NCBI RefSeq assembly: GCF_031769215.1
Contig: NW_026782003.1
Span: 1,178,001-1,242,000 of the forward strand
DNA length: 64,000 nt
Reading direction: 5' to 3'
Source of the DNA: Ylistrum balloti
Taxonomy: Eukaryota
Positions 45,002-64,000 of this stretch are shown piece by piece. Both the position numbers and the translations under genes were made by a program. The notes below the pieces were generated by a model, which did not search any database, was not told the origin of the DNA, and worked only from the letters and a program-made list of their open reading frames with translations. Each line of letters opens with the position of its first letter. The first letter of the stretch is position 1.

Positions 45002-48000
45002 TCAAACCCTTTTGTAGGTGATCAAGTATTCTGGATAACATCGGTCCTTTTCAAACACAACAAATTCCCGAAAGATCCAGAAATCCTCCACAACAATCGA
45101 GTCATAATTTCCTGCATGTGACAGATCAGCACACATATCTTTCTTGCATGTTTTACATGGAGGACGTTTGAAAGCAGCTGCTGGTTTTTTATTTAATATA
45201 TACGGCTCTCCTAGACATATTCGGGTCAAGAACATCTTCTTGTCACTTGTCTTGTCACGCTTTGTCACATAATCTGTAAAGTGAAACATCAGAAATTTCA
45301 TTGATGAATTAAGCATGCAGTTTCATCTTGTGAAGATGTCGATGTTCACTACGTTTAGTTTTCAAAATTAGTATATATGATTACTAGAACTGTCATCCTA
45401 AGGATACCGTATGGAGACCCCAGTCCCCAAACCCCAGATACAAAGGGTATGTATATCAACTGTTTCAGTTTCAGTCCCAGTGACCTCAGGGGCAAGGTGC
45501 TTCACTTTACCATTATAGTAGTGAAATATTTCAATATTTTCTTATTAATTCACATTTTTTCACTAGATACATTTTCAAGGTAATCTAGAAAAGAGTTGGT
45601 GAAATTAGTGAATTTTTTCTCTTTACCATTAACAGTAACATGAGACTCCTGCCCCACCCTACATTTCCCTACCCTTGTTATTTTTTGAGGGTTTTATCCT
45701 ATATGTAGGTACAAAATTAAGCAAACTGATACAAATTGAGCAAAAACAAATTAATTGAAAACAAAATATAAGGCTGTTACACCATTGTGGTATTTTGACC
45801 CTTCGTCATGGTTCACAATCCCATGTCACATTGGTCAAGCATTTGTGTTGTTAGTGTTTGCCTTCTTACACACTGAACCTTAAATCTCCAGAATGCTATT
45901 TGAAATTACTGATTCAACCTACATTCCGGCATGTGTTAAGAGTGTGAAGCTGACCATGTTGATTTTTTATATTCTCTCCTAAAATTGTAAATAAGGAAAC
46001 TTGATAGCCAATATTTCCCTATATCATCAAACTTGCCTAAATAACTTGATGAAGTCACTTCCTGTCATATGTGAATATACTTTTTCTTCTCAATGTAATT
46101 TTCTAAACAATTGATCTAAAATAACAGAAAAACTGTCTGATGTTGGCAACAACCATCATTTCTGTGTCCAAAATACCAAAAACTGCCTTTTTTTGTGACT
46201 TTCTGAAAGTTCATCCAGGCTCCAGTACATGTCAGTACCATTTTGACGCATGAAACACTAAGATGATCACATGACAATCACATGTTCCAGAGAGGTGCTA
46301 CTCAAGCAGATCATTTACAAATAAAATACCATTATTCTCCAATTTTATCTGAATAACTAGTTCGCCTGTAAATGTATTGATCTGAAAGAAAACATCATAT
46401 ACACAGCAAACAGATCACTACAAATTGGTAAACACAATATCAGTGTGCAGATATTTTTTGCACCATGCTATTGTGGCGAGAACAGGAAATGTTGAATGGT
46501 TATAAAAGCACAACACTTGATCAGATAAGCCATGTCTTCTAACAAAATCTTTGAACATTCACAAAATTACAGCTGGACCCATTTCAAAGTGACAGAAAAT
46601 GGCTGTGATAAACACAATCTGTTGTCACTTCTACAATTGGAACAAACTGTAAAGATTTTCTTTAGCATGGACCGGAAAAAGATAGGTCATGACTTGGAAT
46701 CTATAAATGTTGAGACTTGTAAAAGGCTTAGGTGGGATCTGATATATAGGAATGTCTTAGATGATAATTAGTGTTAAGACAAGAGGCCTAGCAGCCTTCA
46801 TGGTCACCTGCAATAAGTAATATTGAACACAAACATTAAAGGGTATACCTTTGAAGTGTCATGAAAAAAAAATTGTGACACTGATGCTAGTAAACCAGTG
46901 TAAACACATGCATACCATCAAATCTATCATCCTATGCTAATAATCCTTATAAAGTTATTCTAAATAAAAAAATATCAAGAAAATACTAACATGTCAACAT
47001 AATCATAATCTAAACTCAAATTTCATAAAACAAGTGCAAAATACAAACAAAACAAAGATTTACATGGAGACTCCTGATCAAGTACAAGAAGAATAAGACC
47101 AGGTGTTTCGGAAAAGTAAGCACCTTCTGCTTCGGAATCAACAGGCAAATTAACAGAGCATCAAACATGTTCAGCTTCAGATCACACTACGAAATTGAAT
47201 ATTTCTCAATGACATCACTATGTTTATCCCCAACCCGATCCCACCCCATTCATTATCTAATAATATTAGATGGCATCACGTTTAAATAGAATCAGTCATC
47301 CCTGTCACAAGTTATCATCTTGAAGCCAAAATATGATGAAAGTCTATTTTTATAAATAGTGCTCTTTGAAGTTGACCTTTTGACCCAAACCACAATTCCA
47401 CTAAGTAATACCTCATAAGCTAACATTGTATGAAATTTCAACCAAATTTATCAATCCTTTCTGAAGTGAGCTGGAAACTAAAATTTGACAAAAAAAAAAA
47501 ATTTTTTAGCAACAATGACCTTCATAGTTGATTTTTTGACCCCAAACTCGATCGCACTCATTATTACCTTATAAGTTAACATCGTATGAAGTTTCAATAA
47601 AGTCAATCTATCCTTTCTAAAGTTTTCATATGGAAACCAAAATTTGACGAAAAATATCTTTTTGTAGGAACAGTAAGGTTTGTGGTTGATCTTTTGACCC
47701 CAAACTCATTTCCACTTTGCATTACCTCATAAGCTAACAATGTATGAAGTTTCAACTAAATCCATTCATTCTTTCTGAAGTTATCATCTGGAAACCGATA
47801 TTCTGACAGACAGAAGGCGACAAACACTATAGTCCCCGCCAGTTTCTGCGGCAGGGGTCTGAAAAACATTGATCAAAATCTATGACTGCCAAAGATGAGT
47901 CTGATGATGGTGCGCTAAAAAAGTTACCTGCATATTGGTCTGACTTTGTGGAGCTCTCTGCTGTGTATACCCCCTGTCCGATGACTGTATTACCAGCCAA

Positions 48001-51000
48001 TCTATTGTCCAAACCCTGGGCAGTAATGATCGCTACTCTGTCCTCAGGTGTTCCATGAAATGTGTAATGCTCATTAATCTCCGGATAGATGTCCTGCATC
48101 AGAGTAGCATCACACAACTTTGTAGTCAGCACCGGCGTATTAGAGGAAACAGCAATTTTTTCAATTGGAGTCAATGGCTTTCCATATTTGGCAGCCTTGA
48201 GAAAAAAATGGGATCTACTTTGAGCATATTTTTCATATAAAACAGGATTTTCTATACGTTCAATATTTGTAACTTGGAGGTTACTGTATCCAATCTGTGC
48301 CAAGCCTTTAGCATCGTTTCCATGTCCAAAATGGGCTGCATTCCAGGACTTTTTGACAAGTGTTTCTATGGCTCTGTACACATTTCTAGTCACTGGTAAA
48401 TACACAGCATGGCTGGATGCTGTAGGAGCCAGGGTCAAGTTCCAGACCTTGAGAGGTTTACTGTTGTCATACTTAGTCCAATATGATGGAGATATTGGAG
48501 ATTGTTCATACATATAGTTGAAATAAGCTTGAGTTCCCTTTGTTGGAGGTGGCCGTTTCTGCAGTGATGGAGTCTTCATGTCTCCTGACGAAGCATCAGG
48601 ATTATGTACATTGGGTTGACGGGCAGGGAGTGGTGGAGGAGTCACAGGCTGACGGAAAGGGAGTGGTGGAGGAGTCACAGGCACTGAAAAGGGTTTGAAA
48701 AGATTGTAAATGTACTACTTATGAAATCACAATCGTACTTTTAAAGACATTGCCTGGAAAAGTATTTTCATAAGTTGTTTCTAAAGTTTCTTACCACATA
48801 ACTGGTGGCTTTGTGGTTCTGATTCATCCATTTTACTATCAAGCTTATATTTCTTAACATAATTCAGTATTTCAAAGTTTGATTTACGTAGCTATTTGTT
48901 TCAGTAGGTCTAGATATATAATCAACACTGATGATCAATCATGTATTTTGGAGCAATTAAAAAAGCCTGCTGATTCAAGGGGCTCAACGGGCCTGTACTG
49001 CTCACATGGTATTCAATGCTCACCAAAAGTAGAATCAGTGTTTATCACCAATTTATTGACATTCAAAGCGAGCACATCCAATCAATTTTAACCAACACAA
49101 GAAGGAGCTTCTAATACTTCATTCTTTTTGTAAACATTGTTGGGCTTCATCCTAGGAACCTGTCAGCTAAATTCTTTTGCATCTTTGGTTCATAAGAGGA
49201 AGTTGTTTTAAGGTTTTCAACAAATTCAACCCCTGTGACCTTGAAGAAAAACTTCAAGGTCATTTCTTTGTGCAGACTTTTTTGGGCTTCATCGAAGGAA
49301 CCTGCGAGCCAAATACCTTTTATTTGTTTATCAATTCATTAATTTATTCGATTAGACTTAAATCCACTATTGAGGTCCTTTGGCCTTTCAGTAGACCAGT
49401 ATATTGTATAGCCAAATACCACACTGTTGGACCATTTGGTTAGTGAGAAGAAGCAGTTCTAAGGTTTTAACAAATGTCAAAAGGTCATTTCTATTTGCAA
49501 ACTTTGTCATGTTTCATCCTTGAACCTATCAGCCAAATACCATGCTTCTGCACCTTTTGGCTATTTCAGATGTAGTTGTTTTAAGTTTTAAAAAAAATTG
49601 TACCCTGTGACCTTAAATGTTTGTCACATTTCTTTTTCTTTCTTTTTTTCCAAACTTTGTCAAGCTTCATCACTGAAACCTATTAGCTTAATACCATGTT
49701 TCTGCAACTTTTTGTAATTCAGTATAAGTAATTTTACAGGTTTTAACAAATTGACCCACTGTGACCTAAAATAAGGTCAAGGTCATTTGTTTTAGCAAAC
49801 GTTGGGCTTCACCTAGCAACAAATGCTGTGAAATCTGGTCTATTAATGATTTAGAAGTTGTTTGAATGTAAAAGTTGATGATGGTGGATGGATGGCAGAT
49901 GCCACAACACAGCATAAACTCACTAATGGTCCTTTGGGTTAAATGAGCTAAAAATGACACTTTTCATTGCTATGGAAATTTTAGTATAGGACACTCAGCT
50001 CTCAACAGTGAATTAATAACTTTCTTTGTGCATACCTGAAGATATGAAAGGCTGACATTCACTTTTGAAAGCCTGAAATATATAAACAAAAAACAAAAAA
50101 ATCATTAATATTCAATTTGCCACATAACTGTGTGTAGCACGCATATATCATTTTCTGAATTTGTGATCATGCGCAAGAACAAAAAGTAGACGTTCAAAAG
50201 TTTTAGCTTATCATCAAAAAGTACAGTAAGATGCACTTGCTCTTTGACTTTGATATACCTTCTGTAAAGCTCCCACACCCTGGCCCTTGTTGAAGATCAC
50301 GATGCGGATATCAGTCAGTGTGGTTTGGGGATTGTCATCACTAAACTCCTTTACACAATTGATCATTTCCTTTGCTACAACATTAGCAGGATAGCCGAGA
50401 CTACCTATTCCTAAGGTTGGAAAGGCTATAGATGTTGTACTGTAGCTGGTTGCTTCCTCTAGACAGCCCATCATGAATCCAAATAGGTCCTGTAAAACAT
50501 CAGACATGGCATTTGTAATAGAAAAACCTAGTGTCTGTTGTTTCTGAATCAGGATAAATAGAATTGCATGGCCTATGACCTTTATGAAATAACTTTCAGA
50601 CACTTTTGAAATTTTCTTGCAGACTGGCACGATCACTTTATATATCATATGGATTCAAACATGTATCCCACAATGCACTGACCTCTTTCGCCTCCTCAGA
50701 GTTAGTGTTTGACCAGTCTGGTAGACAGCCATGGTAGACGTAGTTACAGGCAAGGCCGTATCCTTTTGTCGTCAGTATCTGTCCTGTGGAGATGCCGTTA
50801 GGGTAACTTTTGATGCATTCATCCTGAAGGCTTTGACCTGCGACCTTGAGCAAGGCCTCTGACAGGCCTCCATTTGATAAATCAAGATCAAATGGTACAC
50901 TGTTCACTATTACTTCCACCTAAAAAAAATCAGTTTATTGTTTTGTGATTTTGTTTCTGTTTCTGGTTCCCACTGGTAGTTGCATTAATCATCTTTGCCC

Positions 51001-54000
51001 ATGTTATATTACCCACCCTTGCCCTGTGTGATATTACTCATCTTTGCCCTGTGTGATATTACTCATCCTTGCCCTGTGTTATATAACCCACCCTTGCCTG
51101 TGTGATATTACTCATCTTTGACCATGTTATATAACCCACCCTTGCCTGTGTTATATTACTCATCCTTGCCCTGTGTTATATTACCCACCCTTGCCTGTGT
51201 GATATTACTCATCTTTGCCCTGTGTTATATTACCCACCCTTGCCTGCATTATATTACCCATTTTTGTCCATGTTATATTACCCACCCTTGCCCATGTTAT
51301 ATTACCCACCCTTGTCCTGTGTTATATTACTCACCCTTGTCCTGTGTTATATTACCCACCCTTGTCCTGTGTTATATTACTCACCCTTGTCCTGTGTTAT
51401 ATTACCCACCCTTGTCCTGTGTTATATTACTCATCTTTGCCCATCTTATATTACCCACCCTTGCCCTGTGTTATATTACCCACCCTTGTCCAGTGTTATA
51501 TTACTCATCTTTGCCCATCTTATATTACCCACCCTTGCCCTGTGTTATATAACCCACCCTTGTCCTGTGTTATATTACTCACCCTTGTCCTGTGTTATGT
51601 TACTCATCTATGCCCATGTCATATTACCCACCCTTGCCTGGTGTTATATTACTCATCTTTGTCCTGTGTTATATTACTCATCTTTGCCTATCTTATATTA
51701 CCCACCCTTGTTATATTACCCACCCTTGTTATATTACCCACCCTTGCCTGCGTAATAATAACCATCTTTGCCCATGTTATATTACCCACCCTTGCCTGCG
51801 TTATAATAACCATCTTTGCCCATGTTATATTACCCGCCCTTGCCTGCATTATAATAACCATCTTTGCCCATGTTATATTACCCACCCTTGCCTGCATTAT
51901 AATACCGATCTTTGCCCATGTTATATTACCCACCCTTGCCTGCATTATATTACCCATTTTTGTCCATGTTATATTACCCACCCTTGCCCATGTTATATTA
52001 CCCGCCCTTGTCCATGTTATATTACCCACCCTTGCCTGCATTACAATACCCACCCTTGTCCCATTTTATATTACCTGTTGTTGTGGTAGTGCTCCCATCA
52101 CAACCTCCAAATTTATCTGACCAAACTGTACAGATACATAAGTACTGTTTGCCGTTGCTCCAGCTGTAACATAACAGTGTCCTTAATACAATGTCAAAAA
52201 TATTGAAAAGTTATGATGTAAAAACTGCAAAATCTGGACCAAAAAGTCACAGACAAAAACAAGACAGAGAGGCAGATAGTCATAAACACTCAGACTTCTG
52301 TATAGCTGAAATAAACCTACAATCTTATTACCAAATTGCAGGACACTTTACATACTAGTGAGCATGTGCTTTACTGGCTGGTGACCTATTCTGGCCAAGA
52401 AGGTGACAGAAATGTACCAATTGGTACATAAATAACAAACATTCTATTTACACAATAGCAATTTAACATCTCATCAACATACAAGTTAATGTACATGAAG
52501 AAATTTCATTTTAACATAAATTTAGAAATTTGATAATACAAGCATTATACAATAACTGGGTGCTTATCAATATATACAACAGTATTCATATAATGTTCTA
52601 ATCATACCTATATGATTTCATGGAAACTATTTTTTTTCACAGACATTACAACATCTCTAGGTTTTATATACCTGTATTGCCTGATCCAGAAGACCGGTGT
52701 CTTGAAGATTGTGACCCAGGCCTGAACTGTCGGATTTCGTTTTGAAACACCTTGATACAAACAATAAGTAATATTGACAGCTCATCACTTTTAATGAGTT
52801 ATTTTCATCTATGAACTCAAACTCTTTCAAACTCAAATTCTTTCATTCATAGTTTAAAGTAAATGTGATTTTGTCTGTCTCACTAATGTTGTGTTTAAAC
52901 CTCAAACTTAAGTCTAAATTACTATAGCTTCTAGCTTCATAGCTTTTTTTTATTTACAGTCCTCATTATATTTTGTAATACAAATCCTGTAATATCTAAA
53001 TCATGCAAATGAGATATTCTAAATATGGCCTGATAAAAAAATCTTCATAGGAAAAAATAACTTAATTTTCATCTATGATATCACTCATGTTTCTATTTCA
53101 ATAGCTGTGAAATGAAGTAACTGATGCTGTTTTTCTGTCTCACTTTTTTTGATGGTTGGATAAAATAACAAAGATCTATTTTACTTTCATAATTCCCATT
53201 AAAATTACAATCTTCTGGGTTTTGTACTTCTGGTAAAGCCGCACAATTTTTAAACAATGAAAATATCATTTACAGTAATTAGTTTAAAAAGAAAATTTGA
53301 CATGTATTTTTCTACCATATTTCACTGCAAATAAGCCCTCTCCCTGAGTGGAAAAATATTTACTAACAGTCGGGAGGGGGCACACTTGTGAGCATCCCCA
53401 CCTCCTTGTACGCTAGTGTCCACCATCTTGGATAATTGCTGTACCATAATTTAACAATGGATACCTTCTATTACTGATAATTTTTACATTCAAGTAATCA
53501 ATATCACTATCAAAATTACAATAATGCTGACAATGTTATGAAAATAGAAATAATGTGCAAGTTTAATTATGATCAAACTCACCTGGTATGTTTCAGTGTC
53601 ATATACGGCAAACGTGACTGTCTCTATAGATGAAGAGCTATGAGCTCGTGAGAATGCTTCTAGAGCATCAAAGCCTGTCTTGATGACTTTATCATAAGGA
53701 TACCTCAAATATCCTGTCCCTAGACTGGGAAACACAATGCTTTTCACCTTGAAATTGTCTGCCAGCAACAAGCAGTTTGTAATGACCTTGTACAAACCCT
53801 ACAATGATCAAAATGCATTTATATGTAATAGTCAGTTTACACACATTATAAAACTGTATGTAGTAAGACAGGCTCTCTTTTGCAGAAACAAGTTAAAATA
53901 AAGCAACATGTCACACCATAGAATGTAAAAGAAAGGATACTAACATGATCTAAACTATTAGTGAAACACAATATGTAGACATATATCTCATCAAAATATT

Positions 54001-57000
54001 TAACACTACGGTAAAAGAATAACTGTTCGTGCATAATTGGAAGTGATGACAAATTGCTGTGTTTATTTCAACTTTTCTAAATATTCTTTGTAATGCAAGA
54101 GCAGAATGATAAAGCCTGTTAACACAATTATTATTACTATGACATTCTTAATGACCCGTCAACACATAAAAAGGTCATTAGGGCCATCAACATGTAAAAC
54201 ATACAGTGGTCCTGTTAGTAGAAGTTTACAAAATGATAATTAAAGTGTATACTACAAGACTATAAACTAACACTAATATACATGAATCATGATGGTGAAT
54301 GTTGAATACTATCAATTATACAGAATTACAAGCCTCATTGAATACTGGTCAACTTTTAGCATTAAGGTCCAATATTACTCACTATATCAAGCATTTAAAT
54401 AATATATGGACATGTATGTAATACATGAAATCTAATATTGATGAATTTTCTTTCAATAATTCAATATTTAAGCCTATGACATCTATTTTGTAGACAGACC
54501 CCTATTTTCTTACCCTTGTGTCATTATTCCACTTAGTCAGGTACACATGGTAGATTTTTCGACACCTCAAATTGCCTGGGACAGAAACTGCCACATCCCC
54601 TTCATTTATATTTTGGCTGTAATTATTATTCAAATCATTTTGTACATCTGGGCCTGCAGTTTGAGCGAGGGCCATCGCACCACGACCTTTGGTGAGGTCA
54701 AGGTCTGCTGAAGCACAGTTGACAATGACATCTGCCTGTGAAGTTAGAGTAAGTTCAAGTTGTTCAATTACAACTGCTCTCCTGGGTCACTGAATAATAT
54801 CATTTCAATGCTCTATACAAGCTGCTGTACTAGCAAAACTATATCACATGAAGCTTCTGTTTCATCAAAAATATTCATACATGATAGAATGAACAATCAT
54901 CTCTATTTTTTTGTACCTGAAAAGAACTTGCCTTTTCTATAGCTATAACTTTCCCCAAGACAAGAAATGACTTCAGGTAAACTGCTTTACCTTGTTGTAT
55001 ACAATCAGTGAAAATTAGTTTATCATTATGATTAACAATCACATGTATATAGATAATTGTACTCTCAGTAGGCAATTCTAGATGTCTTAATTCTGTATAA
55101 GATTTGTCTAATGATGTTTTGATGAAAAGCTTTCATGTTATTTTTAAAGTCAATTAACTGAAAAAAAGTCAAAATTAATCTTCTGTCAAGTACATAGGAA
55201 TTCTTGGCTCTGAAAGGATAGTATGTTTGTTTGTTTATTTTGGTTTTAACATGAGACGCAATCAAGTGCAAGCATACTATCTCCGTTCTGAAATATTTTG
55301 ATTCTAAAACAGAAGTGTTGTAATTATCGCAATATCAATAAAAATTTAACAAAAACTAAAACCAGCAGTGCATGATTTTGTTTGAAACGGTCCCTCACAT
55401 TATCTTAGCCAATCAAAACACTCCTTTCAACTACTGATGTCATAGGAAGAAGCTCCACTCACTTTCCTGGTAAGTTGTCAATAGATTGGGGTCAAGATAT
55501 AGGTTGAGGTATTTGGAAAAAAAATTCAAAATGTTTCTCTCCATAGATTATTAGTGTACCAGTAAATTGTTATTTAAAAGTAGATAAATAAAACAACTTG
55601 AAGTGTGGAGAGGCATTGACATGACATTATGACAGAACATTCATCTAAAATTGTTAGAGCATTTTTGTCAAATGAAAATGGATTTAATGTATTAATTTGT
55701 ATATCAATATTCAGTAAAGGTTGAAGACAATACCAAGTAACATGATTTTATTCAGTTGTTATATTAAGTTAATCCCTGGATTGAGAATATCACCTACTTC
55801 ACAATTACAGTGTATTGACAATCACTGACTGTTGCCTAATTTCCACAATTATTGACAATCACTGACTGTGGCCTAATTTCCACAATTATTGACAATCACT
55901 GACTGTGGCCTAATTTCCACAATTATTGACAATCACTGACTGTGGCCTAATTTCCACAATTATTGACAATCACTGACTGTGGCCTAATTTCCACAATTAT
56001 TGACAATCACTGACTGTTGCCTAATTTCCACAATTATTGACAATCACTGACTGTGGCCTAATTTCCACAATTATTGACAATCACTGCCTGTGGCCTAATT
56101 TCCACAATTATTGACAATCACTGACTGTGGCCTAATTTCCACAATTATTGACAATCACTGACTGTGGCCTAATTTCCACAATTATTGACAATCACTGACT
56201 GTGGCCTAATTTCCACAATTATTGACAATCACTGACTGTGGCCTAATTTCCACAATTATTGACAATCACTGACTGTGGCCTAATTTCCACAATTATTGAC
56301 AATCACTGACTGTGGCCTAATTTCCACAATTATTGACAATCACTGACTGTGGCCTAATTTCCACAATTATTGACAATCACTGACTGTGGCCTAATTTCCA
56401 CAATTATTGACAATCACTGACTGTGGCCTAATTTCCACAATTATTGACAATCACTGACTGTGGCCTAATTTCCACAATTATTGACAATCACTGACTGTGG
56501 CCTAATTTCCACAATTATTGACAATCACTGACTGTGGCCTAATTTCCACAATTATTGACAATCACTGACTGTGGCCTAATTTCCACAATTATTGACAATC
56601 ACTGACTGTGGCCTAATTTCCACAATTATTGACAATCACTGACTGTGGCCTAATTTCCACAATTATTGACAATCACTGACTGTGGCCTAATTTCCACAAT
56701 TATTGACAATCACTGACTGTGGCCTAATTTCCACAATTATTGACAATCACTGACTGTGGCCTAATTTCCACAATTATTGACAATCACTGACTGTGGCCTA
56801 ATTTCCACAATTATTGACAATCACTGACTGTGGCCTAATTTCCACAATTATTGACAATCACTGACTGTGGCCTAATTTCCACAATTATTGACAATCACTG
56901 ACTGTGGCCTAATTTCCACAATTATTGACAATCACTGACTGTGGCCTAATTTCCACAATTATTGACAATCACTGACTGTGGCCTAATTTCCACAATTATT

Positions 57001-60000
57001 GACAATCACTGACTGTGGCCTAATTTCCACAATTATTGAATGAAATGGACTGATATTGACAACATTAAGGAATTTGGAAAACAATTTAAAATCCTTTTAC
57101 CTTCTGCTGAACAAAACTTTCATTAACGATGGTTACTTTAACATTGCCGATGGTCCTGAACCTTCTGCCAGAACCCGAGGCTGCTGTCATAGCTCTCTTC
57201 ACTCTCGTAGCTTGTGAAGCAGATGGCTCATCTGTAGGATTTCTAGCTGAATTAAAAGCTATCAGCCAAAAAAAACATACATTCATATAACACAAACCCA
57301 CATAAGATGGTAAACATGTGGTATTTATAGTAACGATAAAACCCTGGTATTTATAGAAATGATAAACAATTGATATCTATAGTAACGGTATACAACTGGT
57401 ATCTATAGTAACGGTAAACACCTGGTATCTATAGCAATGGTTTACACCTGGTATCTATAGCAATGGTAAACACCTGGTATCTATAGTAACGGTAAACATC
57501 TGGTATCTATAGTAACGGTAAACATCTGGTATCTAAAGTAATGGTAAACACCTGGTATCTATAGTAACAGTAAACATTTTGTATCTATAGTAATGGTAAA
57601 CACCTGGTATCTATAGTAATGGTAAACACCTGGTATCTATAGTAATGGTAAACACCTGGTATCTATAGTAACAGTAAACACCTGGTATCTAAAGTAACGG
57701 TAAACACCTGGTATCTATAGTAACGGTAAACACCTGGTATCTATAGTAACGGTAAACACCTGGTATCTATAGTAACGGTAAACACTTGGTATCTATAGTA
57801 ACAGTAAACACTTGGTATTTTTAGTAGAAATATAACAATAGGTTGACTTTTTGATGTATTGCGATAGTTTTGCTCTTGATGGCAATAGGTCAATAACATG
57901 TTTTCAAGTCGATGCTTATCGCAAGAGCTTACTCAATTATAAAATGTTTTATAACTAAACAAAAAAGCTACTTGAAAGCAAGATTTTTCATAGAGTTATA
58001 AATGGATTCAAGCATTCATTTTTTTTTTAAAGCATCTTTGGGACTTGGATAAGGGCTAGATACAAGAACGGCACAATCATCAACTTCGAATGGAAACAGA
58101 ATGTTAAGCACAGAATGTTAAGCACATTGATGAGAGTTTGTATCTTAAATACGTGTAATATCGTTATTGTTTCCAATGTGATCTAATTAAATCTACAACA
58201 TATGGTAGGGGAGATGGTGACTTCTTTTGACTTCAGGTCTATGTTTTAAACCCATCCTAGAAATTATCCATTTTGATAAACGACATGGCAGACAGTAGCA
58301 GCATTTTTGTTATGTGAAAATTAAGAACAACACTAATCAAATTATACACGTGGTGAGGAAATTACAGGTACCTGAATTTGGTAATTACCTATATGATCCT
58401 ATCTTTACTAGACCTATACTGTACTATATTATTCAACATGGCTCTCCCAACAATGTGTCAAACTTACTGTCAAAACAAAACAATAATATGATTGTTGAAT
58501 TGATTAAACACCTTTTAAAATATAAAACAAGTTTGAAATAATGAGGAATTCTACTAAATCTATTGTATAACTAAGACTTACATGAAAATAATAGTCTTGA
58601 GTCGAGCTGTGTATGAGTTTCGCGACGAATATCGCCGAATAGCATGTTTACGTATGAAATGATTATAACGTTTGCTGAATTAAGCATTCTGATACATTTA
58701 AATGGTTAGAGACCTCTGTTTATTTCTGGGTAAGATAACATATTTTAAAAGTAAAAACAAAAACTATCACTTTAGCATAGCAATAGTCACTTAACTATCA
58801 GAATAATATCACAACAGTAATTTCACTATTGCAATACTGTCGTGCAATACTTTTGGGAGAAGACTTATAAAGACTCTAGCCTGTCTAACCCTATTGATTG
58901 TTTATATCAATAAGATATCCTGAAATGAAATGAAATACTGTCGTGATACCTATTTCAGCCTCAATAGTCACCCCTACTTATACTACACCTAAACAATGGA
59001 AACATATATCCAGACGTTGGGTTTCTTTTTCATTGGACATCTTGCATCTGTTGGTTTTGAAATAAGCAAACTATAATTATACTTATCTTACAAACCTGGA
59101 AACCAAATACCAATATCATTACAGGGATGCCCTTTTTGTTGGGCTTTTTTTTGTGTTTTTGCTTTTGTTTTTGATGTAATCACAGTTAACCCCATCACTT
59201 ATCTGAGTACACCAGTTCAGTGATATGGTTAACTGTATTGATGAATCTAGTAGCTCTAACCCCCTACAAACATAAAGTGTATCTTGTTGTTTGATCTCCT
59301 GGACAATTAATGGAAGAATTTGTTATTTTTCAATACAAGAGGACAATACATCCATCTTTGATTTTTTTCTCAGTCTGGAGATCTGCAGAATCTGCCACTT
59401 TCACATGCTCAACACAAACCAAAACCAGAGTTTGATCCATGTAAAACATTTGGGATGTTAATGGTTTGTGAGAAAGTCCTAAGAGGTCCCAAATGACAGA
59501 ATAACATACTGCTGATGTTGCTTTATGAAGACTTGAAAAGAAAAAAATCAAAGGAAATATTAACAAATTTAATCACCAGCATGAGATGCTATTGAAAGTT
59601 TAAATAATGGATCTTAAAATAATACAGTTTACAGTTGAGAAAGCGGTTAATTCCAGACAGGCCAGAAATAGCAATATCCAAGTCTAAAACCATGACAACA
59701 CAGTACTCATAAGAAACTATTACCTCAGCAAAACTTCCATGTGCTATAATTAGTGTCTCAGTTAAATGAGCACAAAAACATTTACCTACATCTAAATCAA
59801 ACCAATAACTTACAGGCATGAATCGTATATATAGGGAGTACAGTGTATGTACTTTTACCGTGAGTAGGAACTTTTAAGTAATATATAAAAAAGGCAGTTG
59901 CAGATATCCCCTTTTTGATAAAAAATAGAAATACTGACCACTCACTAGTGATGTCCATCTGTAAATGTAGTGTACAATAACTATGTAAGAGTGATTGCAC

Positions 60001-60612
60001 ATTATTCTGTGGGAAAATACAATTGAACTCTTGATGATTGTCAATTCCGTTCTCTCTCATGCAGTTATATATCACATATTTAGATATGAAGATTCCTTCC
60101 CTTGTCATATTCAGATTTTCAGGGCTTTTTGGGACCAATAATGAACCCCATTTCCAATCAGAATTATTTCATATTCGAGCCAAATTCCCAAAATTTCTTA
60201 TTTATCAAATTTCTTCACAAAATGAGGAAACAATGCCTAATCATAAACTTATGTTTGTAACTGCCAGTATATACATAGGTCATTTTCGTGATGTGTTGGT
60301 CAGCTGGACTTTCCACTGGCTTTACACTAGCTTTACGCATGGTTTGTACTGTTTACATCACATATTTTGTACTAATGCAGTACAATTATATTTTCATCGT
60401 TCTTATGTTAAAACTGTATATATGCATTTATTTGACATCAAATATCAACTTACAGGTAAGACACATTTAATTTAATGATAATTTCCTTTAAGTATTCAGC
60501 AAAATATCTGAAGTAGGCTATTAACATTACGAAAGCCCTAATACCTAAGGTAGCATCAAACATCTGTATATATACCTGGTCATGTGTACTTACTTGAGTT
60601 AATACTTCCCAT
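45002..60612 (-). CDS. Macrodomain-containing poly(ADP-ribose) polymerase (PARP9/14/15-like; 2 macrodomains + catalytic domain), 11 coding exons, about 767 aa
   Basis: Exons 60594-60612, 57101-57246, 54514-54735, 53583-53798, 52672-52750, 52075-52163, 50683-50919, 50259-50489, 50036-50072, 47928-48683, 45002-45273, phase-consistent (2304 nt). Macro motifs ADVIVN/FPSLGTG and EVIVNSVPFDLDLSNG/FPTLGIG. PARP motifs FHGT, GQGVY, FREFVVF, YPEYLITY. The first coding exon is less certain than the rest; an alternative acceptor exists at 57258. Confidence 0.9.
47305..47866 (+). mobile_element. Non-autonomous HINE/Helentron-like element with about 3 internal subrepeats of about 150 bp
   Basis: Three ttgaccc(c)aaac...tacct(c/t)ataag...tgaagtttcaa units, a gacagacag microsatellite seed, and a 3-prime hairpin ccccgcc...ggcagggg at 47834-47857. 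Confidence 0.6.
48968..49935 (+). mobile_element. Non-autonomous HINE/pearl-like element with internal tandem subrepeats
   Basis: Start aaggggctcaacgggcctgtactgctcac; repeated tgtgacct...aaggtca...gggcttcatc...aacct units; gatggatgg seed; end atgagctaaaa. Confidence 0.6.
50995..52072. repeat. 25-bp minisatellite, about 43 degenerate units
   Basis: Unit tgtgttatattacccacccttgtcc; period 25 read at 51301/51326/51351. Confidence 0.96.
55815..57040. repeat. Near-perfect 37-bp minisatellite, about 33 copies
   Basis: Unit actgactgtggcctaatttccacaattattgacaatc, contiguous with no spacers. Confidence 0.98.
57335..57812. repeat. 26-bp minisatellite, about 18 copies
   Basis: Unit ggtaaacacctggtatctatagtaac; period 26 read at 57721/57747. 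Confidence 0.95.
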
Positions 60613-60799
60613 AGTTCATGGAGAAAGCAATGGTAATACTTTCAATTCTGAAATGATTAAACAAGGGAGCAAGTTTTTGTTAGTATGAAAGGTTGATGAA
60701 ATAAATAATCAAAACCGATTGATTGGTTAATCGACACAAAATCAATAGCTATGAAACAGCATTAATTGATAAACACTACTGATATCATATATATTATCA

Positions 60800-61850
60800 A
60801 ACAAGATCCCATGGGGCCTGTATCCCTTACCTGGTTTAGTTTGGTCCTAATTGTTTGTTCTAATCAGAAGGGGAAGGATTTTAGATATCTTATTTACTGA
60901 AGAAGACAGATTTTCCAGATATTCCTCTATCACAATTACTTGACTCCATCCATATGGCACCAAAGGGGTGTGATCCTTCATTTATACAAGGACTGAGTTC
61001 CCTTTACAAAAAAAATGTTTCAAATAAAATTTGGACAAAATCCCATCATTTTTGAAAAAGGGAAGACTTTGCACTATTTCCCTTACTGGGCCACATCCCT
61101 CCCAGCCCAGTGGGTTGATATCAACAATTGGTACAAAACTGACATCTTCAACTAAGAGTGCTTTGAGACCCTATTTGGATGGTGTCCTGTGATTGCAACA
61201 GAAGAATAAGGGTTTTAAAGAATTGGCACTATTTCCCCTATCAGACAACTCCTCTCCTGTGTAAAGGAGTCCAGACCCATGGTTTATACTAAATAAATTT
61301 CCCTATATCCAAGAACGCTTCAGACCAAATCTTGGCAAAATCCAACCATTCATACAGGAGGAGAAGGATCCATTACCTTATAGAAAGTGAATTCCATTCG
61401 TCCAAGAATGCTTTCCCTCTTGGGTCCCACCTCTCCCACTCCAAGAGCCCAAAACCACAGTATATACAAAACTGATTTCTGTTCACCCAAGGATACTTCT
61501 GACCAAACTAGGGCGAAATCCGGGCATTCCTACATAAGAAGAATGAATTTAAATAATTTGCTCTATTTCCCCATCGAACCCCACCCCTCCTGCCCAAATG
61601 AGCCAATAAACTAAGACCCATTATTTATACAAACTAATACCTTCACCTTAGGATTTTTCTGACCAAATATGTATAAAATCTAATAATTTCTATAGGAGAA
61701 GTAGGATTTTAAAGAATTTGCTTTATTTCCTCTATTGAGTCCCACCTCTCCCAATCTAGGGAGAAGAGACCAACCATTTAAAGAAAATTTGTTTCCCTTC
61801 ACCTAAGGATACTGCTGAAAATTTGTAAATAATGTCCTTGTTCTAAAAGG
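60800..61850 (+). mobile_element. Non-autonomous HINE/pearl-like element, degenerate
   Basis: Start aaacaagatcccatggggcctgtatcccttacctg; repeated atttgcactatttccc...caccta(a)ggat...gaccaaa units. Confidence 0.55.
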
Positions 61851-62639
61851 AAATTAATACACACACACACAAGTATTATGAAAAAAGGGAAGTTGATACA
61901 CACAATAGTATTATGCAAACAGGTAAAAGGAAGTTGATACACACACAAAAAAGGAAGTTAATATATATTGACCCATCATTCTGTCCTGAATCTCAAATTG
62001 TTGACTGTTAATCATACTTTGTTGGTGAGTTTATATTTTCAGCAATCGAAAATCTTACAATTTTTTCACACAATTACATTTACGTATCAGTATTTATTTA
62101 GAAAACTGATATCTGGATGTATTTTCGTTTAGTTTGAATATGAAACCAAACAGTATACGCCTCACAAGTTTAAAGAGCTTATTTAAGAAAAACTTCAATT
62201 GGGTATTGTTTTAATGAATATACTTGATTACCACAGGTACTTATATAAGGCTGTTGCGTGTTTTGTTATTTTTAAGTGCTATTGAAATTGAGTCCACAAG
62301 TACCTGTGCGAATCGCAAGTTTTGTTTTTTTGTTTCAAACATTTTGTTTGTACATAAAGATTTCAGTTTTGAGAAATATACTTCTAGCAAACAACTACAT
62401 ATATGACTGAAAAAAGTTGAGAAAATCCTAAATTATTGCTTTGTATTTTTCATATCATTTCACTTCAAACATAAATGTGACAGGCAATATACTTCTTGGT
62501 TAAATGACTCAGTCAGTTACTTTAGCGGAATATAAAATATGCACACGTTCATGACGGCTTCTTAGAACTTACCACATGTCTCGTTTAATTAATAATCATT
62601 TTAAGTTTACATTTCCATAGATTAATTAATAATGACATC

Positions 62640-62785
62640 AAATTAATTCTTCGTGGTGATAGATTCGTTTATCCAGTCGAGTAAAACGAAAGTGGAATTT
62701 CCGCCAACGTTCGGTTATTTCCGACGTTTTCCGGACCATCGTAACTCTTCGTGACTTTTCTACCGTCATATTCCGATCGAACAAC
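62640..62785. promoter_or_regulatory. CpG-rich bidirectional promoter with adjacent IRF-like and NF-kB-like sites
   Basis: AAAACGAAAGT at 62683-62693 is immediately followed by GGAATTTCC at 62694-62702. It lies between a minus-strand donor GTG|gtaagt at 62572 (probable PARP non-coding exon 1) and a plus-strand ATG at 62786. Confidence 0.55.
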
Positions 62786-62872
62786 ATGGCGGGCGATTTG
62801 AAAAGATTTGTTTTAGAAGAAAGGGAAAACATCCGACGTTATAATGCCAACATTGATGCCATCATAGAAAAG
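62786..62872 (+). CDS. First coding exon of an unidentified gene (partial)
   Basis: Kozak aacATGG; MAGDLKRFVLEERENIRRYNANIDAIIEK then AAG|gtaaat (phase 0), in a CpG-rich region. Downstream exons not resolved. Confidence 0.6.
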
Positions 62873-64000
62873 GTAAATAGAATTATGATTAAATGTATGA
62901 TATGATACCTCCTTTCAGATCCGGATTCCATCATAGATAAGCGTAATGTCTGAGCTCCATCTATTACTCTATGAAATATACATTTATAAGATTAACCATT
63001 ACAGTATATGCCTACCCTACTAAAACAGCAGACTGTATCATCCCTGTCATTTTGATAATATTATATTTATACAGCTCCTGCTATTTCAGCAGTATACTAA
63101 TATCCATAACTTACAGAATGTGCGATTCCTGTGGGATACCGATGAAATTCACAAATGGGCCGGATGCTACTAGTATTAGTAACTATCTACCTACATATAA
63201 TGTCCCAGAGCCAGGTTGATGTTGGTGATGGGTTGCTTTATCAGTTAATTGTGCTGCACCAAAATCATTTCTAACATTTGTTGTATTTCAGAAAACCTTA
63301 TAATGTAACCAAAGTCAGAATATTGTAATCTGAAATCCAAAGCAGAAACCCCAAATAATCATTATCAATGTTTACAGCAACGTACCCGACATCTTAGGAG
63401 ACAATCACAGAGTTTAATATACGAAGTGTTAGATGACCCATTCATTGATAAAAATATAACCTCATAAAGTTGAAACAGCATTAGTGGGTGACTTGGTCAA
63501 AAAACAATCCACATGATTGCTTGTAACATGATTTCCACGAATATGCTCTATTTATAGTATGATTAAATCTACATCCTTGCATATCATCCGGCAAAATAAA
63601 TCCAACTGGGTATATGATGTATCATCTTTGTCTATAACAGATCAAGTCCCTTGGCAGACCTCTTGATGACAATACTAGATTACTATCCTTGTAGATTGGG
63701 GTGATTTCTTGGACACCTTTTGTTTAAGTAACATTGATATTGGTGAACCCAGAATTTAGTCTGCTGCATTCCACTGTAATTTCAGAGGGCGGGTCCCCTG
63801 CAGAATCAGATTTTCTCTGTCTTCCAAGGGAATTGAAGGAGACCAAAATATATCTGCTACCCCACTTAGGATCTTGATATTTTGCTCTCTTTTATTTCCT
63901 GCTTTGCCCCTTAAACTCTTTCATTGTATACTTTATACATGTTTAGCGTTAAATATACAATGTAGTTATATGTCTCCTTCTTGACATCCATCCTTATAAG

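Follow-up and report, generated by a model that had tools for sequence, protein, structure and literature searches.

A conserved 19-nt coding micro-exon completes a scallop macro-PARP and gives it a predicted N-myristoylation signal

INTRODUCTION

In the vertebrate enzymes PARP15, PARP14 and PARP9 (ARTD7/8/9), tandem macro domains precede the PARP catalytic domain. The same arrangement is found in the product of LOC132545501, a gene on the minus strand of a 64,000-nt stretch of the genome of the scallop Ylistrum balloti (contig NW_026782003.1, positions 1,178,001 to 1,242,000; hereafter, the window), whose NCBI protein, XP_060065166.1 (P0001), is marked partial. Its closest described relatives are the PARP14-like proteins of Pecten maximus (XP_033742533 and XP_033742532) and Mizuhopecten yessoensis (XP_021359151 and XP_021359150), which have the same architecture, are 726 to 756 amino acids long and about 60 to 80% identical to it, and start with MG-x-x-x-S/T. 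The micro-exon reported here for Y. balloti, with its 19 coding nucleotides and both splice sites, is present in Pecten too, and only annotation sets the Y. balloti gene apart, its model being 5′-partial. In the literature, no comment was found on the MG motif of the scallop orthologues.

An initial Met-Gly of this kind is familiar from N-myristoylated proteins such as the Src-family kinases, MARCKS, the innate-immune adaptor TRAM/TICAM2 and FSP1, and PROSITE describes the site as G-{EDRKHPFYW}-x-x-[STAGCN]-{P} (PS00008). The scallop protein shares with these classical substrates the Met-Gly start, a small residue 6 and a disordered N-terminus, but they have a proven lipid and usually a palmitoylated cysteine or a polybasic run, whereas the lipid of the scallop protein is predicted and its second signal is weak. 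To our knowledge, no human macro-PARP starts with MG and no PARP is known to be N-myristoylated; a literature search for myristoylated, lipidated or palmitoylated PARPs found nothing relevant. According to PMC4736023 (citing Resh 1999), the substrate signature of N-myristoyltransferase (NMT) is MGXXXS/T, with Gly2 as an absolute requirement and with Asn3 or Gln3 favouring modification, and the signature is neither sufficient nor strictly necessary. A precedent for the mode of action, and for nothing more, is the Pseudomonas syringae ADP-ribosyltransferase HopF2, whose N-terminal myristoylation sequence is described as needed for membrane localization (PMC4263708, citing Robert-Seilaniantz 2006). 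HopF2 is a bacterial effector of an unrelated ADP-ribosyltransferase clade, is not a PARP, lacks macro domains and is modified by the NMT of its host.

RESULTS AND DISCUSSION

A micro-exon supplies the start codon of LOC132545501

A search with the 295-residue translation of a window exon retrieved P0001 at 98% identity, and XP_060065166.1 mapped exactly onto ten window exons, beginning at 57184 and ending at the stop at 45002. The NCBI start falls inside the exon that begins at 57246. The part of this exon upstream of a conserved internal Met (57190-57188) aligned as protein with Mizuhopecten and Pecten (DEPS, then VKRAM versus VRKAM), and, since it is coding, translation must therefore start in an exon further upstream. 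An earlier reading of these letters, made from the sequence alone, had proposed a 54-nt exon with a strong acceptor, a GTAAGT donor and an ATG in the context aactATGG, encoding MGSINS plus one base; all of these were present when the window was read directly. On the minus strand, with exon borders marked by slashes, the letters are ...cccttgtttaatcatttcag/AATTGAAAG...CTCCATGAACTATGGGAAGTATTAACTCAA/gtaagtac. The ATG (60612-60610) has a strong context, with A at −3 and G at +4, ATG GGA occupies 60612-60607 and sets Gly2, and the coding part ends in a phase-1 donor (CAA/gtaagt).

The proposed junction was likewise in phase. The leftover base of the micro-exon forms a Thr codon with the CT at 57246 (acceptor ttttaattcag/CT; border cag/CTAGAAATCC), the joined exons read MGSINSTRNPTDEPS... 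in the frame of the macro domain, and past the Thr the frame runs on as RNPTDEPSASQATRVKRAMTAASGSGRRFRTIGNVKVTIVNESFVQQK into the first macro domain. An alternative acceptor at 57258, 12 nt upstream, is also in frame, as the sequence-only reading had held; use of either acceptor is possible, and the N-terminal motif is the same either way. With the 57246 acceptor the coding sequence (CDS) amounts to 2295 nt and 764 amino acids, against the 726 to 756 of the orthologues.

A TGA stands in the main frame 6 nt before the micro-exon ATG and rules out a longer upstream CDS, which the sequence-only reading had named as grounds for rejecting its proposal. This TGA is supplied by the letters of an upstream open reading frame (uORF) in another frame, which has no counterpart in the Pecten exon (Table 1). 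The description of the exon as hidden held in part: it is absent from the partial Y. balloti model, as are 62 nt of exon 57246, but it is annotated in Pecten and Mizuhopecten.

The exon is conserved and transcribed in related scallops

The micro-exon and both its splice sites aligned to the annotated first coding exon of Pecten maximus XP_033742533 (L005:4001), which reads cag/AATTTAAACC...GCTATGGGAAATTACATCACAA/GTAAGTA and, as in the window, contributes 19 nt from the ATG and ends in phase 1. The matches comprise the acceptor, an untranslated block (CATTGCTTTCT), the letters ATGGGAA and the donor GTAAGTA, and the alignment does not extend into the flanking introns. Short first coding exons ending in phase 1 were also found in Sinanodonta woodiana (22 nt coding, donor gtaggt) and Saccostrea echinata (40 nt, gtaagc), so that the first coding intron is in phase 1 in all of them, after 19, 22 and 40 nt in Pecten, Sinanodonta and Saccostrea, respectively.

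Three RNA contigs are transcript-like by length and layout; two of them, from scallops other than Y. balloti (L001 and L006), carried the homologous exon in spliced form, and the third (L002) is from a venerid-like clam. L001 matched from the exon start (AATTTAAACC) and diverged upstream of it, a pattern that splicing to an untranslated exon would produce, and its MG start is preceded in frame by a TGA 9 nt away; L002 likewise had an in-frame stop ahead of MGGSPSSK. L006 contained ATGGGAAGTAACAACACAA, and from the donor position on its letters depart from the intron sequence, so that the same donor is used. When the 5′ ends of these cDNAs were aligned to the window with blastn-short, only a core of ATGGGAAGT was recovered for L006 and none for L001 and L002, which are too divergent. 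We regard the RNA contigs together with the Pecten annotation as the decisive evidence, and from these comparisons the micro-exon is almost certainly real and used in Y. balloti.

Comparison with chance and with a second individual

The 6.75 kb upstream of 57246 contain 150 in-phase ATG..GT candidates, among which the micro-exon ties for the best donor (8 of 9 positions). Two other MG candidates, at 59195 (MGLTVIT) and 61621 (MGLSLL), were rejected for a wrong residue 6, weaker donors and lack of conservation. In 1500 first-order Markov simulations of the upstream stretch, a start was counted if it fitted G-{EDRKHPFYW}-x-x-[STAGCN], had a purine at −3 and had an in-phase donor within 60 nt; such starts appeared in 0.13% of the simulated stretches with a donor of at least 8/9 and in 0.9% with one of at least 7/9. 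Since these criteria were picked after the fact, the control is supporting evidence only.

A run search with an 885-nt exon returned a single run (X1), which consists of genomic DNA contigs crossing introns and comes from another individual. In X1 the ATG, Gly2, Ser6 and both splice sites were intact, Ile4 was replaced by Ser (GSSNST), the next exon carried R24T and Q53K, and the stop of the uORF was TGA in place of TAA. The high-copy repeats at 58632-58830 and 61617-61815 stood out as depth spikes in the same run.

Gly2 and Ser/Thr6 are kept while their surroundings drift

The sequence-only reading had asked whether Gly2 and Ser6 are conserved, and they were, with Ser or Thr at position 6, in the scallop orthologues, Saccostrea, Sinanodonta, Ruditapes and the venerid-like contig. 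Among scallops, Mizuhopecten XP_021359151 starts MGNTTSSSSDEPS... (MGNTTSS), Pecten maximus XP_033742533 starts MGNYITNPQ... and XP_033742532 starts MGNNNTTSSSVDEPS... (MGNNNTT), and RNA contigs gave MGGSSSST... (L001) and MGSNNT. Outside the scallops the starts were MGQNSSK and MGHKASK in Saccostrea, MGLQVSK in Sinanodonta, MGAEQSK in Ruditapes philippinarum and MGGSPSSK in L002. Gly2 and Ser/Thr6 were kept in one bivalve macro-macro-PARP group that spans Pectinida, Ostreida, Unionida and Venerida, and both the window start (GSINST) and the X1 allele (GSSNST) fit PS00008. Counting isoforms of the same genes separately, an MG start was present in 15 of the 78 Met-initiated proteins of at least 400 amino acids, and a match to PS00008 at position 2 in 12; on the same count, the pattern fits there in 10 of the 36 proteins of 550 to 1000 amino acids.

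To keep the N-terminus out of the comparison, a tree was computed on the last 330 residues alone. It placed the window gene in a fully supported scallop clade, every member of which has the MG exon, and placed Saccostrea, Sinanodonta and L002 in the same unresolved group as that clade. A separate 13-member clade of paralogues, which includes the two other Y. balloti macro-PARPs, XP_060082609 and XP_060082610, has no MG starts. The MG signal thus belongs to one orthogroup that predates the split of the main bivalve lineages. Across the orthologues the following 30 to 40 residues vary in sequence and in length while MG...S/T stays, and such drift around a fixed Gly2 and Ser/Thr6 fits selection for N-myristoylation.

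A myristoylation-type start was also seen in a protein of different make-up, P0161, a 513-residue product of an RNA contig with a macro domain and a RING finger, which begins MGASASD.

The completed protein is a macro-macro-PARP with an H-Y-E triad

The nine downstream exons encode two macro domains, a PxxP linker and a PARP catalytic domain with H-Y-E. Pfam reported two Macro hits and one PARP hit on the window exons (minus strand, 45002-54786, with PARP split over exons) and the same set on P0001; a WWE domain, which among PARP9, PARP14 and PARP15 only PARP14 has, was not found at E ≤0.1 on P0001 or P0152, nor were RRM or KH domains. In the structure alignment, the Glu of FREFVVFE stands opposite Ile in PARP12 and Leu in PARP15, which bears out the H-Y-E triad suggested by the sequence-only reading; the window protein does not carry the H-Y-[L/I/Y] triad of the PARP14/PARP15 type, which is degenerate in PARP9. 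In architecture it is most like PARP15 and PARP9, and its best matches of solved structure include the catalytic domains of PARP15 and PARP12. It differs from the vertebrate macro-PARPs in having H-Y-E rather than H-Y-L or H-Y-I, in the WWE, RRM and KH domains not found, in a cysteine-containing insert and in the MGxxxS/T start. The contrast with vertebrate PARP9/14/15 drawn by the sequence-only reading may be kept as an analogy only, since the window comes from a bivalve mollusc.

The insert just mentioned is conserved (RPPCKTCKKDMCADLSH) and lies in the catalytic domain (45002-45273 and 47928-48683, minus strand) where PARP12 and PARP15 have a short loop; its CxxC-x4-C-x4-H pattern may be a zinc site. 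At 48617-48682 (minus strand) a 33-nt tandem duplication yields PVTPPPLPxRQP twice (PxxPxR, resembling SH3 ligands), and Mizuhopecten has one PPLPKK.

A predicted N-myristoylated start

We propose that the micro-exon is a genuine internal exon and that the Gly2/Ser6 start which it encodes is co-translationally N-myristoylated, a reading to which we assign a probability of roughly 0.72. An untranslated upstream exon would be spliced to the micro-exon acceptor, and the micro-exon would contribute the start codon, six codons in all and one base, joined in phase 1 over a 3.35-kb intron to 57246 (or possibly 57258). The completed protein of about 764 amino acids would read MGSINS-T-RNPTDEPS..., followed by the two macro domains, the PxxP linker and the H-Y-E PARP domain. 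Removal of Met1 would expose Gly2 which, with Ser6, would form an NMT substrate, and co-translational myristoylation would then let the protein bind membranes, or a partner that binds lipid, weakly and reversibly. The basic residues between positions 8 and 36 (R8, R21, K23, R24, R33, R34 and R36, a loose set) may aid this binding, and splice forms that skip the MG frame may modulate it.

Several observations weigh against this proposal. The N-terminus has no nearby Cys for palmitoylation and no dense polybasic cluster, and myristate alone would bind weakly. The MGxxxS/T consensus, though the sequence-only reading cited it in agreement with PMC4736023, does not by itself establish a lipid, and lipidation here is a prediction. 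Some relatives have annotated isoforms without MG (Mercenaria and Mya isoforms X2, and Crassostrea virginica), and Ser and Thr abound in the N-terminal region, so that Ser/Thr6 in part reflects composition. The exon also has, in another frame, a weak upstream ATG that overlaps the start codon, and L006 joins the MG exon out of frame with an open reading frame (ORF) from the internal Met, which means that the anchor may be optional. Finally, the sole run matched for Y. balloti is genomic DNA, and the RNA evidence for the exon comes from related species only.

If the exon and its MG start are real, the protein could still be myristoylated slightly or not at all, with Gly2 kept for the start context, for N-terminal processing or stability (for example, a Gly N-degron) or by inheritance. 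G at +4 is favoured at starts and leaves Gly, Ala, Val, Asp or Glu as residue 2, Ser/Thr6 comes cheap in such a Ser/Thr-rich region, the consensus is insufficient in the account of PMC4736023 on this point, and a second membrane signal is not visible in the N-terminus. However, Gly2 is present in every MG-type orthologue over four bivalve orders while its neighbours, the length of the region and the intron position drift; residue 3 is always one tolerated or favoured by NMT (S, N, G, Q, L or A), with His in Saccostrea cucullata as the sole exception, and residue 7 is never Pro. We consider this explanation unlikely. Somewhat easier to entertain, if still improbable, is a pair of forms, one myristoylated from the MG exon and one soluble from the internal Met, produced by an alternative 3′ splice site, alternative first exons or leaky scanning, so that the anchor would be regulated. 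L006 (positions 1-190) speaks for it, since its MG exon is spliced to a point 119 nt upstream of the exon-2 homologue, which closes the MG frame after 20 codons and leaves a long called ORF that starts at the internal Met; the overlapping uORF on the window exon, the annotated isoforms of relatives with other N-termini and the conservation of the internal Met in the window gene, Mizuhopecten, Pecten b, L001 and L006 point the same way. Yet L006 is a single assembled contig of another species, perhaps an unproductive or partly processed transcript, and in the Pecten a gene the whole region of the internal Met is missing.

The exon itself could be questioned, in that a chance pseudo-exon of 54 nt would leave translation to start at the internal Met of exon 57246 or in an exon beyond the window. 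The large number of in-phase ATG..GT candidates upstream, the absence of a call by the NCBI pipeline and the genomic origin of the one Y. balloti run would allow this. Against it stand exon-specific DNA conservation with Pecten that includes both splice sites, the presence of the same exon in the RNA contigs of relatives, the coding conservation before the internal Met, which demands an upstream start, a chance expectation of 0.1 to 0.9%, and a head-to-head neighbour 2.1 kb upstream that leaves little space for another start exon. A chance origin is accordingly very hard to credit. We retain the N-myristoylated start from a genuine micro-exon as the preferred reading, under which a fatty-acid-anchored ADP-ribosylating enzyme in the scallop is a fair prediction. 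A membrane location of the macro-PARP through this lipid is plausible and not assured, because the N-terminus lacks a Cys for palmitoylation and has only a modest basic patch.

More tentatively, and rather against the odds as we see them, one ancient H-Y-E macro-macro-PARP orthogroup might be a lipid-anchored and perhaps chain-building writer of ADP-ribose, with a switch between anchored and soluble forms through splicing or initiation. If so, the PARP family would gain its first lipidated member, and the myristate would hold the enzyme, its two macro domains included, at a membrane. The targeting of ADP-ribosylation to membranes is an open theme, and a Gly2 signal that an H-Y-E macro-PARP has retained over several hundred million years offers a concrete and cheap hypothesis. 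The macro-PARP family is expanded in bivalves, and members of it are reportedly mentioned in oyster infection studies. What is new here is the correction of the model together with a conserved lipidation signal on an H-Y-E macro-PARP, the exon having already been annotated in sister species. The repair of the truncated gene model adds 27 residues and the true start codon to give the protein of about 764 amino acids, and it provides a case of a 19-nt coding micro-exon lost by an annotation pipeline.

Gene organization and neighbouring genes

The features of the locus are collected in Table 1.

Table 1. Features of LOC132545501 and its head-to-head neighbour in the window
Feature	Position	Strand	Remarks
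Micro-exon of LOC132545501	60594..60647	minus	internal, 54 nt; 35 nt of 5′ untranslated region and first 19 nt of CDS
Out-of-frame uORF	60601..60621	minus	six codons (ATGAACTATGGGAAGTATTAA); weak context; overlaps main ATG
Phase-1 intron	57247..60593	minus	3347 nt; 26-bp tandem repeat, ~20 copies, at 57309-57826
Next coding exon	57101..57246	minus	Ser/Thr-rich N-terminal linker (TRNPTDEPSASQATRVKRAMTAASGSGRRFRT) and start of macro domain 1; alternative in-frame acceptor 57258; conserved internal Met at 57190-57188
Remaining nine coding exons	45002..54735	minus	mapped exactly from XP_060065166
Exons of LOC132545501	54735-54514, 53798-53583, 52750-52681 (GC donor), 52163-52075	minus	XP_060065166 map
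Exons of LOC132545501	50919-50683, 50489-50259, 50072-50036, 48683-47928, 45273-45002 (stop included)	minus	XP_060065166 map
Head-to-head neighbour, first coding exon	62786..62872	plus	MAGDLKRFVLEERENIRRYNANIDAIIEK; within conserved 98-nt block

Comparison of the window with the Pecten upstream region gave only three conserved blocks, namely the first exon of the neighbour, the micro-exon and the exon at 57246, and the untranslated first exon of the macro-PARP was not located in this comparison. The 98-nt block at the neighbour (window 62780-62877) is 88% identical to Pecten L005:1721-1818, where a minus-strand CDS ends at 1812; the product of that gene in Pecten maximus has 1179 amino acids, and in both species the block lies upstream of the micro-exon, at a distance of about 2.1 kb. 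The untranslated first exon and the promoter of the macro-PARP should lie in 60648-62780, bounded by the neighbour exon, and the two genes may share a bidirectional promoter region of about 2 kb.

Within LOC132545501, the 70-nt exon at 52681-52750 (minus strand) of the NCBI model has a GC donor (GATCAG/gcaata). Intronic tandem arrays occupy 55813-57039 (37 bp, 33 copies, 99% identity), 57309-57826 (26 bp, 20 copies) and 50995-52075 (24 bp, 45 copies). Downstream of the macro-PARP, LOC132545626 (25825-30433, minus strand) encodes a membrane-type protein of 184 amino acids that is highly conserved among scallops. An older Mizuhopecten model, OWF47652.1 (980 amino acids), fuses the counterpart of this protein to the macro-PARP, which is why both proteins fall into one cluster.

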